DNA of 62,841 nucleotides, filler included, from Choristocarpus tenellus KU-1152 (taxonomy: Eukaryota > Protista > Phaeophyceae), in assembly GCA_964200185.2 (NCBI GenBank). It is 11 parts of 11 records of this genome, joined end to end, with 100 filler letters (N's around TTAATTAATTAA, not from the genome) between each part and the next. Parts side by side here need not be neighbours in the genome. Positions count along the whole stretch, not along the records: positions 34,317 to 42,098 come from CAXNAD020005584.1; 10 more parts are not named here. The stretch is one strand, 5' to 3'. The position numbers and the translations under genes were made by a program. The notes below the pieces were generated by a model. The model had not been told where the DNA came from. It made no database searches and worked only from the letters and a program-made list of their open reading frames with translations. Positions within the stretch are counted from its first letter, which is position 1. The number at the start of each line of letters is the position of its first letter. Positions 34,217-44,800 of the stretch are shown in pieces.

Positions 34217-34723
34217 NNNNNNNNNNNNNNNNNNNNNNNNNNNNNNNNNNNNNNNNNNNNTTAATTAATTAANNNNNNNNNNNNNNNNNNNNNNNNNNNN
34301 NNNNNNNNNNNNNNNNAGGTTGGCGGTCAAATCTGTATGCTAAGACATGCATTGTTTGTAACACACATGACTAGAGTGTTGTTTACAATCTACTATTCAT
34401 TCATTGTATACCTTGAAGGTAAGGATGATAATAGGATGGATTTTGTATGTAAAGAGTTCATTGTTGTTTTCTGGAATATGACAGGGTTGTGCTTATTATG
34501 CCAGCAAGATACAGATGAGTTATAGTAGTGTTGTGTGTGACTTGCTATGTATAGACAGACGTAGGTATGTAGAGCAGAGTGGATGTGGTGTTATATGTAA
34601 AACAATGAAGACTTTGTTCGATGACATGACTTGCCTTGGGATCTTGTACCTTGTAAATATGTGTATGGTTATGATGATCCCCCTGCTGACTCTTTGATTG
34701 TTGTGTGTGCCTCCTCCTAACAG

Positions 34724-34840
34724 GTTCCTGATGATCTACTTACCAAGGATTTGAATGGAAAATCAATTTTGATGAATGTCGTCAAGAACGGATTTTTTGA
34801 TGTGATTAGGTTGTTGCTGGATACAACGGGAGTATCTGAG
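34724..34840 (+). CDS. Ankyrin-repeat exon (117 nt, phase 0-0)
   Basis: cag|VPDDLLTKDLNGKSILMNVVKNGFFDVIRLLLDTTGVSE|gtgtgg fits the ankyrin pattern D..G.T.L..A...G...++.LLL. Confidence 0.8.
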
Positions 34841-35697
34841 GTGTGGACAGAATATTTGTTATTTGTGGCGATTTGTATTTTGATTGGTATTATTTTGATC
34901 TCTGGTTGGATTGAATTACAAGAGGTTGGCAGTCAAATCTCTATGTTAACACATGTATGTTGAAGTATTCCACACTGAACTCACGATTGTGTGCCTTGAT
35001 AGAGGACAATAAGTGGCTTGATGCAAATATACAATGTTAATGTTACAAGAGGCCTTTGGTTTCAATTCCACTGACTGAACTCATGGGGTGAGGCAGGTGT
35101 AGATTACTATTACTATTCCTATAGCATGGGGTTTGCAATCGTCCACACTAATTTACTATGAATCACTTATTTGTTTTTAGTATAGCAAGCGTATCTAGAA
35201 CATGACACAAATTGATGGACACTAGTGAGGCAATAAATATGGTATATCGATAACCAGCTCTCCATCGTATTATTTATTCCACTGGTGGTATCTATGGTGT
35301 ATCAACAGCACTATCCACGAACAATGGATTGGTTTCTAACAAACATGACTAGAGTGTTTTGTACAAGCCACTATGCATTGATTGTATACCTTGATGGTAA
35401 GGATGGTGATAGGATAGATTTTGTATGTAAAGACTTGATTGTTTTCTGCAGTGTGACAGAAATTGGGATTATTATGCAAGCAAGACACAGATGAGTTATG
35501 ATAGTGTTGTGTGACTTGCTATGTATAGACAAATATTGACATATTGAGCAGAGTGGATATGGTGTTGTTGTGAGCAAATCAAAGACCCTATTTGATGACA
35601 TGATTTGCCGTCGGATCTTGTGACTTGGAAATATGTGTATGATGATGATGATCCCCATGCTGACTTTTTGATTGTTGTGTGTGCCACCTCCTATCAG

Positions 35698-35814
35698 TTT
35701 TCTGAAGTAGTACTTAGGAAGGATGGCGATGGACAATCGGTTGTGATGCTTGCCGCTAAGAATGGAGATACAGCAATGATGAGATTGTTGCTGGATACAT
35801 TGGGAGAAGCTAAG
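35698..35814 (+). CDS. Ankyrin-repeat exon (117 nt, phase 0-0)
   Basis: cag|FSEVVLRKDGDGQSVVMLAAKNGDTAMMRLLLDTLGEAK|gtgtgg. Confidence 0.85.
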
Positions 35815-38800
35815 GTGTGGACAGAATATTTGTTATTTGTGGCGATTTTGTATTTTGATTGGTATTATTTTGATCTCTAGTTGGATTGAATTGCAAGAGG
35901 TTGGCAGTTAAAGGTCACTTACGAAATGTGTGTGTTTGGTGCGAAACTGTTTGATGGTGGATATTTCACTTTTAATGAAGCTCAGAGCTTCTTGTAGCTT
36001 CGGACGCCAACAGGTTTGATGTAGTGTTTAAATGATCTTTTGCTGTGATTTAGTTATTATGATTCGCATTGTGCAGCATATTTTTAATCTCTCTGTTGAA
36101 TACCGTGTTTGTTGATAAGGTTCGTGTTTTGGTAGTTTATATCTAAGATGAGTATTTAGTCCTCTTTCATCCCTATTTTTTGTTGGTCACATCTTTAGTT
36201 TATTGAGGAAAACAGTATCTCGCAAAGAAGTTGTCAACGTAAAAAATATTTCAGTATATTGATACAAAATAGTATCAAGATATTTAGAATATTTAAATTT
36301 GGTACTGACAATATTTCTACCTTCCAAGTCTGGCATTTCCAGGATAGCGACATGCATTTTGTGAGATGATTAAGTTTGAGGGGTTTTTTTGTGCATCCCA
36401 TGATTTTTATGTGACATGTAGTTGCTATTGGTTTTTGCATGTGCGATTGAAAGAAGAAAATATTTGTGCTACCACGTGATGTTGTTATCCTTTGAGTTGC
36501 AATGCTTGAGCACACTGCAACTGGCGTCTGGAAACAGGATTAAAGTAGTACAGTAATATTTTGTGGTGGGAACTTTGCACTATGAAGTGGACTGAAACGT
36601 TCATGCTGTTCGCACATTTGAGTAGTCAATTAAACACCATTGTGTCACCACAGCGTAACATTTGCTGCAATTTGAGCTGATAGCAGTCTATATCTTCAAA
36701 GGTTCACTGGTTCTTGTAAACATTTTTACAATTTGTTAATGTAGAACATGACCTCACTGCCACTTGGAGGTGGGTCCCCTGCAAGTATTGCAAGTATTAG
36801 TTCAATATGAAGAGTGCAAGCCAATGATGTACAACCACACTAATCTTCGACCAACCTACAGACAGTAACAAGCTGTTGTTCTGTTCCAAAGTCTAGACTG
36901 CCTCTACAAGGCCTCCAGAAGTTGAAGCTACGGGCTGGAATTTACGAAAAATTGAAGAAAGGTCATTTGTGTGTAATAATTGTAAGATGCTGATAAAATG
37001 TCGAAAAGAGCTATAATGCATTTGTTGACACGTGTTTGAAAGTGAACATCAGAGCAGTTGGATGTTACAATCAAAAAGCTTAGCAGGTCATGGATAGAAA
37101 CCCTAGGAATGAACATGATTGTGAAGATGTTGACTGCAGAGAGTTTTGGTGTAGTGTTCTTGATAGAAGCCAGAAAAGTACTTGTGCCTTGTGGAATGGG
37201 TAGGATGCTTTATCGTGGAGTTTTGTAATTTGTTTTACTCTGTGAACAAAAAGTGGAACTGACTTGTTCACATGCCAAAGCAAATTGTTCACACCGCAAG
37301 ACTATTGCAGACCTCATAGGTCATGATGGATTCAATCTGAGCCAAAGAGTTCAGGTATGGGCTACTCTTACCCTTGCCTACCCGTCCATTGGTGAGCTTT
37401 TCCCTTGTATACCATCTGTGACTACAACATGGAAATGTTGATATTCCAATATCTACATTTGATTGCTGATAAACAAGGAAAATGAAGCTCATGGACCCCT
37501 CTGTTTATCACCCATTCATAGACTTCTCCCATGGTGCTATGAAGATATAGAGCCCTAGCTGTGCAGGTGTACAAATTGTGTGATCTCTCCCTATACTGTT
37601 TTAGTTGTAGGTTGACATGTTTCAGAAATGGCCTTTGCTATATGCAATGGAGATTTCTTGTTGTTTCTCCCCTATGACAGCAGATATGAAGGAATAATCA
37701 CAGACAGTTGAAATATTACCCTGTGCCATAGACCCATTGCATACAGGCCTGATCCACCACCTTTCTTGCAAAACTAGGCATTCTCTCACTGTATTGCCTT
37801 TGTTGATGATGGCCCTGTACTTAATTTATGGTCACAATAGTCTGTTCCCGTTTCAACTGCGTTCAAGTATGCGCTCAGAAAACAACTAATGCTGTACCAA
37901 TCGGTTTTGGTGAATAATATACCTACTCAATCCATGTATAAATTGAAGAAAAGACTGCAGAACAAGTGTGTTGCTTTGTGTCCCTTTGGCCTCAGGGCTT
38001 GGAGATTTACGGTTGACTTGTAGCCCTGGTGTTGATGTTTTTTTATGGAGGTGTGGACTGGACATAATATTTCCTGCACCTTTATGGAGGATGAGCCATA
38101 TGCATTGGGGCTATACCACACACACACACACACACACATATAAGATGGAGGCCTGCCTAGCAGGCAAGGCCCAGCAATATACCGTTGCCGCTTTGTCAAG
38201 CTGACACCTGACATCCTTGATGCAAGGGGGGTGTAGTTATTGAGGCCGTAATAAAGGTAATCAATTCTGGTCTGAAGGTTGTAACAAGATACTCTTTTTT
38301 GGTTTGTGAGAGTATCTAACTAGATTCTATAGCATGTGGGGGTTTTTATTGAGGAAGTTGTGACTTTTTTGTGATGCCCAGTTGAAGGTCCGAGCTTCAG
38401 CTTTTGAATATGCTGAGTTTTTTTTTTTTCTGGAAAATATTTCTGGTGAAGATACAGCACCTTGTTGGGAATAAAAATCAGGCCTAAAATGGTTTATAAT
38501 GTGCAATAATAATATGTTGCCCTGGTGTTGAGGAGTGTAATTGCAAGAAAATGGAATTTCAAATTCTGGATATGAGTTACCCTAATAGGCATGGATCTTA
38601 CCATGATGAGATGGGCAAATGAGGTAGCCCCTCACAAGCGGGCAGCTATTGTTGACTATATTTTTGACTGAGCAAGTTCCTGGGTACAAATAATGTTCAA
38701 GTTTCGAATAACCCCAGCGGCATTGGAACTGTTGGTAAAGGTGGCATAAGAGCACCTGGATAATGGACTGGATATGGATACAGCCTTTTGTTTCAAGGGA

Positions 38801-41800
38801 TGGGCAAGACAACTCTTGCAAGTAGAGCATGTAACAATTGAAGCCGTCCCAGTGCTTGGATGGATGAAAGGAGGTAACCCCGGAAGGCCAATGCCACCAA
38901 ACAGAGGATGAGGAGGTTTACTATGGAGTTGGGGTTGAGACCATGCTGCAAGTCATCACGCCTCCATCTCTGACCTCTTGATTGATAGGGTAGTCTTGAT
39001 GATGAGCAGCATCTTGAAAAATGGCACTGAGCATGTGTTGGACTACATGTTTGACTGAGTTCATCTGGTCTCCACTGTCTTTGTGGTTTACCTCATCCTT
39101 GGGGAGGCACCACCAACTTGCCCAGTCACCAAATGTTCAAACCCTTGATCTCAGATTCTTCTCAGTGCAGACCGGGTCATATTTAGTTTATGTAGACATT
39201 GTTGGGGATTTCGGAAGGATACGACACTTAGAGGCATGGAATTCTGGCAGAGCCTCTTCGCAGAGTGTAGGACTGAGCTGAACAACTTTGGGTGACAACG
39301 ACTTTGTGAGAGTACACAAGAAGCAAGAGGATCAGCTGAGATGAGTGTGTGTGTATGTAAGTTCTTGGTGGCCAAGACAATACTTTGTTTGGAGGGTTTG
39401 GCGAATAAGGAAATTCTTAAAGTTTGCTTACTTGCTTTGCACCTAATTTCATGTTGAGGTAATGACAAGATATAGTAACATATTGTGTATTCCCTGTCCT
39501 TGTTTCGCCCAAGGTTTGGTGTACCAGGTTGCTTTTATCATTGTTGCATTATTCTAGCAAACCACAGTAGGATTCAGGCACTGAAGAGGAGGATGCTAAT
39601 ATTGATCATTCAAACAGCAACGTTGAGTACTGGTGAGGTACATAAGCCAGGTGTACTGAGGTTGACATGCGTGAGCCTGTGGTGTGTAATTTATCACCCC
39701 CTGTCGATTTTTGTTTATTCTGGCCTCTGTGGTAGTTGCCTCTTTGTATACCCAGGTAGCTCTAGTTAATTTGCATTCTAGTGTTATTTTTAGGTACTGT
39801 TGCTGTTTTTGTGCTATTTGTGGAGTGTGTAATCACACCACAAACTTGCGACTGTCAGAAATATCTTGGAACTTGGTCAGTTTGAATTCCAAACCTTGAA
39901 ATTGGGGAGTTTATTTACATTATCTATATGAATCAGCACTATGCCTTGAAACAGAATGTGTGACTGTAGGTACAATTGGACTGAGATCCTCAGTCAATAA
40001 TATATTTTAATATTAAAGAACTACCACCTCCAATCCACAAGTCCTGGTTGAGGTTGGTAACAAAAGAATGATGTGATGTTTTGAATGGTTGGCATTGTTT
40101 ATGTATGAAACATTCGTGTCTTAATTGTTGTCGTTGCTATCAAATTTCTACTTCAAAGTGTTCAAGAGCGCCTTGTTGGCTATACTCCTTGCCGTTTTTC
40201 AAAGGTTTGCACTACTGCTGCACTGCAATGCCCATATGTGGCACAGACATCAAGCAGGTGCAGCAACTTGAGGCAGTTATTATGGGAAGTGGTAATAAAC
40301 TTGCAACAACCTGCAGTTGCATACTATGATGTTTAGAACTGTCCCATAGTGTAGAAGATGTGCCAGTTACAGTGAACATAATGTGGTGCTAAATTGAAGT
40401 GAGCATTTTATGAGTTTGTCAAAGGCTTGTCAAGGGGAGGGGATATCCTGTTGACTGTGGGACCATTTCTTATGGTTGAGGTGTATAGTTTCCTGTTAAA
40501 CTTGAAGCAAATCCCTACAGAACTATAGTATCTCCATCATGCAACGAGGGGATTGTCTCGGCATGTGTTACAACTAAAATTGGTCTGCATATCAAGACAC
40601 TAAGGACAGGTAGAGCCTAGAGAGATCCACAGATATCATTGACTCAAGAATTGAAGGAAATTTGTCTACTACTCTTGCACCTTTTGAGGACACGTTGAAC
40701 ATGAAGAAGGCTAATGAGCAGGATGAGAACATTTTTTTATCTTCTATTTTGTCAACAATTGCTGTTGATCTCTATATGCTCATATGGACTATGAGAATGG
40801 ACAACAAGTGTTAAGAAGGGAAGGACAGTTGAGGATTACAAGGATATTGTGTGTGTGTAATATTTAAATAATATTGTAATAGTACATGTATCTGTTTGTC
40901 TCGTGTGTTGTTTTAATTTTTATATTATTTTTTTATTATTTTTAGGCATTCTGCTCTCTTGTATGTAGTTGTCTCTTATACATCATTTTTGGTGCTCAAA
41001 TAATACTTCTGTCTATAGTAAACGTCTGTAATAATTTATGGTTATGAGATCATTCAACATCAGTCTTCTCACTAGTGCATTTAAAATGGACACGTTCCAG
41101 GTGAGCATTTGCCAATCTACTCCCAGGTATGCTTGTCCTCAAAAGAAGAAATACCTCCAACCCATGGCATGCACTCCAAAACCTGCCAGGCATAGTTTTA
41201 GCATATACACCTCCATGCATCCTCCACAATTGTGGAGACAGGGATATCTATCCACAGGATCTTTTTATTACTTCATTCTGAAGCCTCCCTATGGACAACT
41301 GTCACACACCTACACACACACACATACGCACCCTTATGTAGGTGAACGTGACTCCAAAGCCGCAGACACACCCACGCGTACACCAACAATTTGCCAAAGA
41401 CACAAGGAACCTCTGCTGAGGACCCATGTCGTTCTTCCTACTCTGATATCACCCCACATGTAGAAATCCCAGGGTTAGGCTTCCCTCCAATGAAAACGCT
41501 GTTTGTCTTATTATTATTTTGTTGTAAGCTTTACATCTTTACATCCTTGCAATTTCCATGGCAACAGAAAAAATAACAAGTAATTACAAACACCGGGTAT
41601 TCTTGTTGTGTTGGGCATTCCCCACAATCATGGATGTTATGCAACTGGAATTTTGGGCATGTTACTTGACACATGTATGTCATGCATGTATGTATGTGTT
41701 GGAATTCCCATGGCACAGTATCAAGTCAAGAGGAGGGAGGCTTTGTTTGTAGATGGCATTTGTTGTTCATAGGATTCCCTGTACGGAGTCATAAATGTGG

Positions 41801-44800
41801 AGTTTGGGGCCATGAACACGGCATGATGGGGTGCTGGAGTTAGCAACACCCCAGTACGCAACTTGGCAATATGTATAGTCTGATCCTCTACTACAATAAG
41901 AGGATGAGGAATAGATTATATATTTGCAGGGGGGGGTTCGGGCAGGGCATATTATAAATGACTAGAGATAGCTTCCATTCACCTTTCCCCTTCCGTTTCT
42001 CCACCCATGCAGCCCACAGTAACACTGCAGAGGGGGGAGGGGGTGAAGGGGGGGGGGGGTTAACTGTTAATGTTACTTGCTCCCAAACTGTACCCAGGNN
42101 NNNNNNNNNNNNNNNNNNNNNNNNNNNNNNNNNNNNNNNNNNTTAATTAATTAANNNNNNNNNNNNNNNNNNNNNNNNNNNNNNNNNNNNNNNNNNNNAG
42201 TGTGGAGGGGGAGGAAGTGGGGGTGGGGTGGGGGGGGGGGGGGGAGGGGGGGGGGGAAAGGACAAAGGAGACTGGGTAAAATTTACGATGATAGTTGATC
42301 TCCTTTGAGGGGAGGGGTAAGTGCGTTTTCAAGTGCTGGTGGGGTGTCTACAGTGTGTAGCATTGTAATGGTAGATGACTGACTGGTTTGATGATGTCTA
42401 CTACAAGCAGTTGTAGCAGCAGCAACTGTATCTGATGCCTTGGTGTCTCCATTTTTGAGTTCATGTAAGCGTGGACATTTTAGAGATTCTGGTTTCTTCT
42501 CTTGAAGGGCCGTGCAGGAGGGAGGGACCAGCTGGTTTCATTTTATGATCACAGGCAAAATAAATAGTGGTCAATTTTGGTTGGCAGTGCACAATGACTA
42601 TGTAAGAAATTGTTGGTGTTTTATTGTATATAGCACACTGTCAGCAATGGCATTTGTGTTGCCAAACCGTCCCACTGACCCCCTCCAATTTTTGGTCCGC
42701 GGCAGATATCAAGGATTCCCTGGATACATTTGTTAGCCCTCCCTCACTAAATAGGCCTGTTTGATTCACTGTTCATTAGAGCTCTGCCTTCTCCCTCATT
42801 TTGTTATGGAGAGTGGCACAGAGCACACATTTTGACTTGACCTTTTAACACTTAGTGCTAGAGCACACATGGAAGGTGTACCGCCTTTTGCTGCAATAAT
42901 GCAGGGTATTTTCTACCACAAGTAAAAGCTCTGACAATAGGTTCAAACACTTGTGAGTGGGTGTGTATGATTTCTTCCAGCAGTCGCAATGGACTTGTCC
43001 CTCTTAAGGAAGAAACTACAGCAACTCCCTACTGCGAAGCATTCCAGTCCATTGTCACGTGTTGCTCGTTCTCAAGGTGTGGTGGGTACTCTGTCCAACA
43101 CTGAAAATAATGGCGTTACAAAAATGGGCAAGGAGTATGTGGAGGAGCGTAAGGGTGAATTTGCTTATCCGACAATTACCATCATCTGGAGGATTGGATT
43201 TTTTCAGACAGATTCAATGAGCCAGCTAATTGGAGTTAGATTAGAGCAAGCCATAGTAGGTACTTGAACCCATAATAGTGGAGTTGGATGTGAACACGGC
43301 AAGTGTATTTACTTTGATGCTTTCCTCTTTCTTGCCTTTCGTTAATGTATCAAAGCAGTGTGGATATAGCCTATGAGTCGATCTCTCTGCTAGGAGGTAC
43401 TGAGCACTTGAGAGTGCTTGAAGGGGAGAACCACAGTATAGCCAGAGCAAAGATCAGTACAATTGGTGCCGCGTGTGATGAAAGACCTTATTGGTGGTCA
43501 AAAACTTGACAAGAACGATGGGTTCCTGGTTTATGGTTGCTCCTTAGCATCAATACTGCTTGTCTCTTTACACTGGGTGGAAATTGAGATTCATATATAT
43601 ATATGTTTTGGTAGTTGACGTGATGAACCGAAAATTGTATTATCCCACAGGACAACTTTGACCTGCTGGAAGCAGCTAAGGGTATGCCCTCGTTCAATCA
43701 GTCCATGATGAGCGAAATGGGCAGGAACTACAAAACATACCCGGAGAGATCACACAATATCTTGCTTCAATTTTGATACTTCACTCCTCTTGCCAAGATA
43801 TTTTTTGTTGTTTAATAATGACCGATACAAGAGTGTCAGGATCGATAATACAACAGTGAATCTTGAGCTTAGAACAGTCACCGCATCTTGTAAAATCTCA
43901 CATCCTATTAGGCAGGTACATGCCAAAACAGCAATGCCATAAGTGAGGTCGGATGTGAAGGTCAGAAGGGCGACGGAACAATACCCAGAGATACCTACCA
44001 ACTTACAATGATTTCATTTTCAAATCTCGGTATGAGGGACCATGAGTATTGCACCTCAACCTATATGACCACCTATCATGGATACTAAATGCCATGATGA
44101 GGAATGTTGATATGCTTTCTTTCTTGGCACATGTTAGTCTGCTGAGATTCCCTCCAATGGAAGTATACTCCACATGATAATTTGTTACTATTGTGTAGTT
44201 GATTTAACTTGGCATCATCAATAGGTATATTATTCCGTCTCTTATCATAATCAGCGGTATTGGGTGGATGTTTAGTACAAAAAAGAGGGACGGAGCGGGG
44301 GCACTTGTGTTGGTCAATTGTGCTGATCATTCCTGGTGTCTTTAAGACTCAAAATGCCTGCTGAGATCACCAAGGAGAACATCAAATACTCTTTAATGTT
44401 TTACCTGAATGAAACTCATCACACAAGGCTCTAAAATAAGGATGGAAGTTATAATTGGGAGACAACGAAGCACATTCCAGGAGCAAGAAACGTCATAAAA
44501 ATAAATAGATTTCTCTGCGATTGAGACCTCACTAAAATGTACCAATGCAACACTTTGAAGTATTGTAGTAACTGCGAGGTCAACTCGCTCGTTCCAGCAG
44601 CATTGCCCTCAATCTCCTGTTCAAAACTCATTTCACTCCACAATACAAACATAACAAGAAATAACAAGAGAGCCTAGGGCAAATTGCCACACGACATCAC
44701 ATTCCCACTCCACAATCGGCACAAGGTACCAACAGGTGACTTACGAGCAACAACACCCTCTCGCTATCAGGCACAAACCTACCCTCCCACAACTCTTATT

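Follow-up and report, generated by a model that had tools for sequence, protein, structure and literature searches.

The window, a 62,841-nt stretch of DNA (filler included) from the brown alga Choristocarpus tenellus KU-1152, holds at positions 34317-42098 (CAXNAD020005584.1; positions throughout are those of the whole window) a piece in which ~600-nt ankyrin cassettes of a eukaryotic gene form the 3' end of a tandem array on the + strand. Each cassette consists of one intron and one symmetric 117-nt exon, and the piece contains two complete units, the last complete ones of the array, together with the truncated tail of the unit before them and about 14 nt of the next. The cassette is present roughly tens of times in the genome. 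Its introns are more alike than the exons that they flank, which is the reverse of the usual and points either to gene conversion restricted to introns or to accelerated change in the exons. An ankyrin-repeat gene that grew by tandem cassette duplication, with its introns kept alike by gene conversion, is the reading that we favour, at about even confidence.

Exons, introns and units of the array

Both exons are preceded by AG and followed by GTGTGGACAG, and on the + strand the ankyrin frame is the only one open in both, the other two frames having 4-5 stops each. Searched one at a time, the exons match Pfam Ank_3, Ank_2, Ank_5 or Ank at E=0.001-0.005, which is under the gathering scores because each exon holds one repeat only; by sequence, both have the features of Pfam Ank. 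A profile built from the two exon sequences matches the designed consensus ankyrins 1n0r (E=1.9e-20) and 1n0q (E=1.6e-14), the former being its best match of solved structure, and the consensus repeat corresponds to positions 4-33 of the exon. The exon repeat has the same helix-turn-helix as the consensus, with the TPLH motif replaced by S-V/I-V/L-M. It differs from 1n0r and 1n0q in having M for the TPLH histidine and ~6 more residues after helix 2, a long loop that accounts for the 39-aa period. Framework residues common to the two exons are L6, K8, D9, G12, S14, M17, KNG 21-23, RLLLDT 29-34 and G36. Consecutive repeats are represented by the two exons here, by one more cassette implied to the left and by one contig with an in-frame exon-exon junction. 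A comparison with a protein atlas gave generic ankyrin clusters only. Borders, open frame and profile matches thus agree with the initial annotation, which had described two 117-nt phase-0 exons each encoding one 39-aa ankyrin repeat.

The head-to-tail duplication spans 34317-35912 (+ strand) and is real, as had been proposed, although the two cassettes are not of one length. Unit 1 (34317-34922) has 606 nt and is truncated by the contig edge; unit 2 (34923-35898) has 976 nt, because ~372 nt belonging to a separate repeat (34959-35331) are inserted in its intron. Only the first ~14 nt of a third unit are present (35899-35912): the similarity of 35815-35912 to 34841-34937 stops at 35912, the sequence beyond is unique and the read depth is that of a single copy from 35917. 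At the other end, 34317-34352 matches the unit junction at 34923-34958 (86%), so that a preceding cassette must be truncated at the contig edge. A joint from 34895 to 34317 supports this, and the cassette tail that had been noticed at the contig start is therefore real. The G+C content of the piece is 38-40%, compared with about 53% in Ectocarpus.

Exon 1 and exon 2 differ at 37/117 nt and share 16 of their 39 residues (41%), with 23 codons changing the amino acid and 3 purely synonymous, counts that are exactly those first reported. The intron that follows each donor has hardly changed between units, with 3 of 97 nt different and one 1-nt indel (34841-34937 vs 35815-35912), in keeping with the earlier estimate of about 3 differences in ~90 nt. 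The intron before the acceptor differs at 52 of 361 aligned nt (p=0.144), and the 37 nt at the start of the unit differ at 6 positions. When the exon is set against all aligned intron (37/117 vs 61/495), the difference has a Fisher p of 2e-6; among 511 sliding 117-nt windows of the unit, divergence is greatest in that of the exon. Thus, the reversal of exon and intron conservation claimed at the outset is real and goes beyond chance. Divergence within the intron is itself patchy, at ~3% after the donor vs ~14% before the acceptor (p=0.0013), a pattern that conversion tracts would give. Indels are confined to the intron, with 7 events in 495 nt vs 0 in the exon (P=0.01-0.17).

Copy number and exon joining

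Read evidence comes from three public runs (X1, X2 and X3) of one study on the same organism, library type unrecorded, whose contigs were placed on 34317-36716 at 80% likeness. The single-copy flank draws one contig per run, at a depth of ~44 in X1 and 10.5 in X2, and the cassette draws 735 contigs in X1 and 503 in X2. Summed over the homologous bins of both units, depth is ~1090-2350 in X1 and 260-380 in X2, or roughly 20-50 times single copy, a factor that gives an order of magnitude only. The cassette is thus not limited to two or three copies in the genome.

The introns and exons behave differently in assembly. An upstream-intron contig of 262 nt, which covers 35469-35585 and 34620-34722, is collapsed at a depth of 911 in X1, 214 in X2 and 56 in X3; for the first two runs this is ~20 times single copy, and in both of them the contig stops at the acceptor AG at 34722. 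The exon 2 bins (35677-35836) reach 1008-1678 in X1 and are built of contigs of single-copy depth. Among those listed, the ones that bear exon 2 (records 3-5) lie at depths of 20-33, which corresponds to about one haplotype copy apiece, and 12-18% of their positions disagree with the window. Exon-1-like sequence, at 80% likeness, has only ~2 times the single-copy depth, which makes exon 1 a rare variant, exon 2 being the common type. Two joints, 34895 to 34317 (on a contig of single-copy depth) and 34949 to 34354, connect the end of a unit to the start of a unit without the 372-nt insertion. More units must therefore exist, one of them immediately to the left of the piece.

One contig of X3, of depth 6.1, follows the window as far as 34837 and, after an additional A, resumes at 35696. 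Read out, it joins an exon-1-like end (...TCT AAG) directly and in frame to an exon-2-like start, and this intron-less junction falls exactly at the predicted 34840|35698 borders. The exon 2 bins of X3 have depths of 177 and 377 vs 5.5 and 5.9 in the intron bins on either side, a 30- to 60-fold difference; those of X1 have 1008 and 1678 vs 708 and 434 in the flanking intron, and X2 is likewise without a contrast of the X3 type. The source is either RNA in X3 or an intron-less copy in the genome, whether processed or ancestral; in both cases the exon borders are supported. The joining of exons at the predicted sites thus has behind it one in-frame contig from a run of unrecorded library type.

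Conversion, selection and decay

In the favoured reading, the array would have grown by unequal crossing-over of whole cassettes, and its introns would be homogenised continually by gene conversion and unequal exchange. The exons would be ordinary neighbouring ankyrin repeats of older divergence (41% identical), whose escape from homogenisation would be due either to a divergence too great for pairing or to selection against converted exons, and the product would probably be a functional many-repeat ankyrin scaffold. Coding constraint is suggested by the indel-free exons, the two intact pairs of splice sites and the retained framework residues. At synonymous sites the distance between the exons is 0.30 (NG86; range 0.16-0.58), which is no lower than the 0.13 obtained for the intron, and thus the exons look older than the last common ancestor of the introns, if the difference is real. 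Several points weigh against this gene-conversion reading. The argument from exon age is drawn from two aligned exons with 27 synonymous sites and is not significant (p=0.07-0.16), and conversion confined to introns would need selection or mismatch rejection in the exons. The proportion of non-synonymous differences (pN 0.34) exceeds the intron divergence (0.12), a result to be expected of positive selection too. Copy number cannot be read directly from summed contig depth. No public run containing the stretch is recorded as RNA, and no transcript came from such a run. In the piece, neither a start nor an end of the gene is seen, the 20 longest downstream open frames have no Pfam match, and no ROC-COR, NB-ARC, NACHT or kinase domain is present.

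The main rival, possible but rather unlikely in our view, is the diversifying recognition receptor of the initial annotation: exons under positive selection and reshuffled, like introns acting as recombination handles and symmetric exons permitting skipping or shuffling, which would make the array the ankyrin equivalent of the LRR-ROCO and NB-ARC-TPR genes of brown algae. The status of the exon as the most diverged window of its unit suits this reading, as do the tens of cassettes, the break of the collapsed intron contig at the acceptor and the exon contigs that are single-copy variants. All exons seen have 117 nt and phase 0, which is the condition for shuffling named in the available text of PMC3341825, and the nearest-scoring proteins include NACHT/NPHP3_N-ankyrin and COR-ankyrin architectures, though the match is generic. 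The non-synonymous distance of the exon pair (dN 0.38-0.45) is about 3 times the intron distance (0.13), but synonymous sites (dS 0.16-0.58) also look more diverged than the intron, and omega ranges from 0.7 to 2.7 by method. The ratio proposed as a check on selection thus comes to about 1, for one pair with ~27 synonymous sites. When 37 random substitutions are placed on exon 2, 16.5 +/- 2.1 residues stay identical, vs 16 observed, and therefore the pair alone gives no proof of positive selection. Nor are the variable sites enriched on the ankyrin binding face: of the six positions randomised in designed ankyrin binders, located through the alignment to the consensus ankyrin, 10, 11 and 13 differ and 8, 21 and 22 are the same (3/6), vs 20 of the other 33 that differ. 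The differing residues are spread over both helices and the loop. The partner domain foreseen by the receptor proposal (ROC-COR, NB-ARC, NACHT or kinase) was not found within the piece, including 6 kb downstream; the gene continues past the left edge. The lack of a run recorded as RNA tells against the receptor also. Thus, the multi-copy cassettes and the in-frame junction stand in favour of the proposal, and selection, binding face and partner domain do not. To take the introns as recombination handles is reasonable, but plain concerted evolution fits equally. It is unlikely, though conceivable, that the array is an ankyrin exon-cassette recognition system in the full sense, with tens of single-repeat exons, near-identical introns as handles and binding surfaces rebuilt by exchange, gain, loss and skipping; it would then be a third repeat type after LRR and TPR, in a different lineage.

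Two other explanations were weighed. An amplified and decaying gene fragment, in which a piece of ankyrin sequence has been multiplied in the manner of a macrosatellite and the exons have no coding constraint, is quite improbable. The random-substitution control is as this explanation would have it (the exon changes are indistinguishable from random, and P(no stop)=0.30), and it agrees with the transposon within one unit, with the 6 kb downstream that show no further exon, gene start or gene end, and with the record of the runs, none of which containing the stretch is listed as RNA. However, a neutral process cannot leave the exon 2.6 times more diverged than the adjoining intron, and the exon has escaped indels, which the intron has not. 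Neither pair of splice sites is disrupted, the two exons are open on the + strand in the ankyrin frame alone, G12, KNG 21-23, RLLLDT 29-34 and G36 of the framework are retained, and one contig joins exon to exon in frame. Far less probable, to the point of being hard to sustain, is a mobile intron of the introner type, the like introns being copies of an intron-generating transposon that entered an intron-less ankyrin array repeatedly. The high-copy intron contig does end at the acceptor, and the conservation after the exon does begin at the donor. Nevertheless, exon-2-like sequence is about as abundant as the intron, so that the exon context is repeated at similar depth, and the similarity continues in frame through the exon; the conserved intron is therefore not an independent dispersed transposon, a concern that had been raised at the outset. 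In addition, the introns lie at the same phase-0 position of every repeat, their ends have no terminal inverted repeats, and the last intron shares its first 98 nt only and then passes into unique sequence, as at a duplication breakpoint and not at a transposon end.

Related systems and the surrounding sequence

Tandem exons that each encode one ankyrin repeat are familiar from animal ANK1/2/3, in which most 33-aa repeats are single 99-nt exons. The array resembles these in having one repeat per symmetric exon in a long tandem series, but in ANK1/2/3 the exons are conserved and the introns unrelated, whereas here the repeat has 39 aa and the introns are 86-97% alike. Introns that are more alike than exons are known among paralogues of MHC (major histocompatibility complex) class I/II and of the snake-venom phospholipase A2 (PLA2), and conversion together with selection on the exons is the explanation given. 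Those cases share the reversed conservation, but they are whole-gene paralogues, unlike the single-repeat cassettes within one gene found here.

In brown algae, the closest parallel is provided by the LRR-ROCO and NB-ARC-TPR genes of Ectocarpus, which have one repeat per exon in phase-0 exons of equal length and for which exon shuffling has been proposed as a source of variation in the available text of Zambounis et al. (2012, PMC3341825); brown-alga ROCO genes have also been surveyed (PMC11378527). The present array is like them in its one repeat per exon, its phase-0 exons of equal length, its head-to-tail repetitive exon-intron units and its many cassettes. It is unlike them in the repeat, a 39-aa ankyrin in a 117-nt exon here vs a 24-aa LRR in a 72-nt exon, and TPR, there, and in that the piece contains no ROC-COR or NB-ARC. 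Conservation of the flanking introns of the Ectocarpus genes is not stated in that text of PMC3341825. Repeat domains of fungal NLRs (ANK, TPR and WD40) consist of highly similar repeats with hypervariable positions, according to the available text of PMC13449251 and PMC12258605. The array would share with them ankyrin repeats that evolve by gain, loss and exchange, and the best-scoring library proteins are of the NACHT/NPHP3_N-ankyrin kind; the fungal repeats, however, have 33-36 aa, lie in one exon and are near-identical bar a few sites. In the present array, by contrast, identity between the exons is only 41% and the likeness resides in the introns. If the cassettes are exchanged or skipped, they would represent, with ankyrin repeats, the same type of system as the brown-alga candidate receptors with shuffled LRR and TPR exons, and a natural counterpart of designed ankyrin binders. 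If only concerted evolution is at work, the array would be a clean case for how conversion tracts stop at exon borders in a repeat-protein gene.

Coordinates of the cassette array and of its neighbouring sequence in the window
Feature	Positions	Strand	Remarks
Intron upstream of exon 1	34317-34723	+	cut by contig edge; first ~36 nt are preceding cassette tail/junction; 34354-34723 matches 35332-35697, p=0.144
Exon 1	34724-34840	+	117 nt, phase 0/0, one 39-aa ankyrin repeat; AG 34722-34723, GT 34841-34842; Ank_3 E=0.0024
Post-donor conserved intron segment and unit 1/unit 2 junction	34841-34958	+	unit 2 starts 34923; high summed depth; structure z=0.13
Dispersed repeat, non-autonomous element	34959-35331	.	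absent from unit 1; extreme depth; does not belong to the cassette
Intron upstream of exon 2	35332-35697	+	aligned to 34354-34723
Exon 2	35698-35814	+	117 nt, phase 0/0, one 39-aa ankyrin repeat; Ank_5 E=0.001; common type in genome
Unit 2 post-donor segment and ~14 nt of third unit	35815-35912	+	3' end of array
Unique downstream sequence	35913-40900	+	same G+T excess; possibly continuing intron/transcript; no exon recognised

The two-exon profile, searched with HMMER, matches 6789 proteins at E<=0.001, of which 150 matches are listed. These 150 are ankyrin proteins of a generic kind, with many repeats whose period is 33-36 aa; the NACHT/NPHP3_N-ankyrin and COR-ankyrin architectures are among them, and no close relative or partner domain could be derived from them. 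P0080 (415 aa), encoded on an intron-less 2.2-kb metagenome contig, is the sole protein among the matches listed to have a period of 38/39 aa. It has the S/T-x-L-M ... MRLLLD pattern of the exons and is rich in alanine; long-loop repeats with such a period exist elsewhere. No match came from word-index protein searches in which the queries were exon 1 extended by its read-through (79 aa) and the open frame of 93 aa that surrounds exon 2. Two open frames of the window, looked up as exact sequences, matched no contig, and a 24-nt word taken from the conserved intron had no match in a metagenome scan. Six-frame inspection of the piece revealed no further ankyrin exon.

Two other roles for the conserved intron sequence were considered and rejected. 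Against a structured RNA or a host for a small nucleolar RNA, the cassette has no Rfam or tRNA match and fold z values of 0.1-0.7; the ATGATGA...CTGA words before the acceptor are ~9 nt apart, which is too close for a C/D box RNA. Read-through of the donors (34841-34960 and 35815-35877) would give a hydrophobic peptide resembling a membrane helix, but it is probably not coding, because the 1-nt indel between the copies breaks the frame and the stretch is T-rich.

The repeat that interrupts the intron of unit 2 is a dispersed element distinct from the cassette and far more abundant. Depth in the bin 35117-35196 is 39255 in X1 vs ~44 for a single copy, and the core (35127-35172) surpasses single copy by a factor of ~800-900 in X1 and X2, and by a relatively larger one in X3. 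Loose contig ends at 34990/34993 and 35321/35323 correspond to the borders of the repeat in other copies. The interval 34959-35331 has no tRNA head, tRNA match or Rfam match, and the ends of the repeat may carry a 6-nt target duplication (ATGTAT / ATGGAT).

From the left edge of the piece to ~40.9 kb, the GC skew is positive and the AT skew negative, that is, there is an excess of G+T on the + strand. The skew reverses at ~41.0-41.5 kb, where the sequence is C-rich and CA-rich, and this could mark the end of a transcription unit. A weak match to Rfam EBv-sisRNA-1 on the - strand at 39336-39431 (24.5 bits vs a gathering score of 58, E=0.017) is taken as chance. The piece also has (CA)n microsatellites and, close to its right edge, a G-run (38117-38138, 41303-41336 and 42031-42059).

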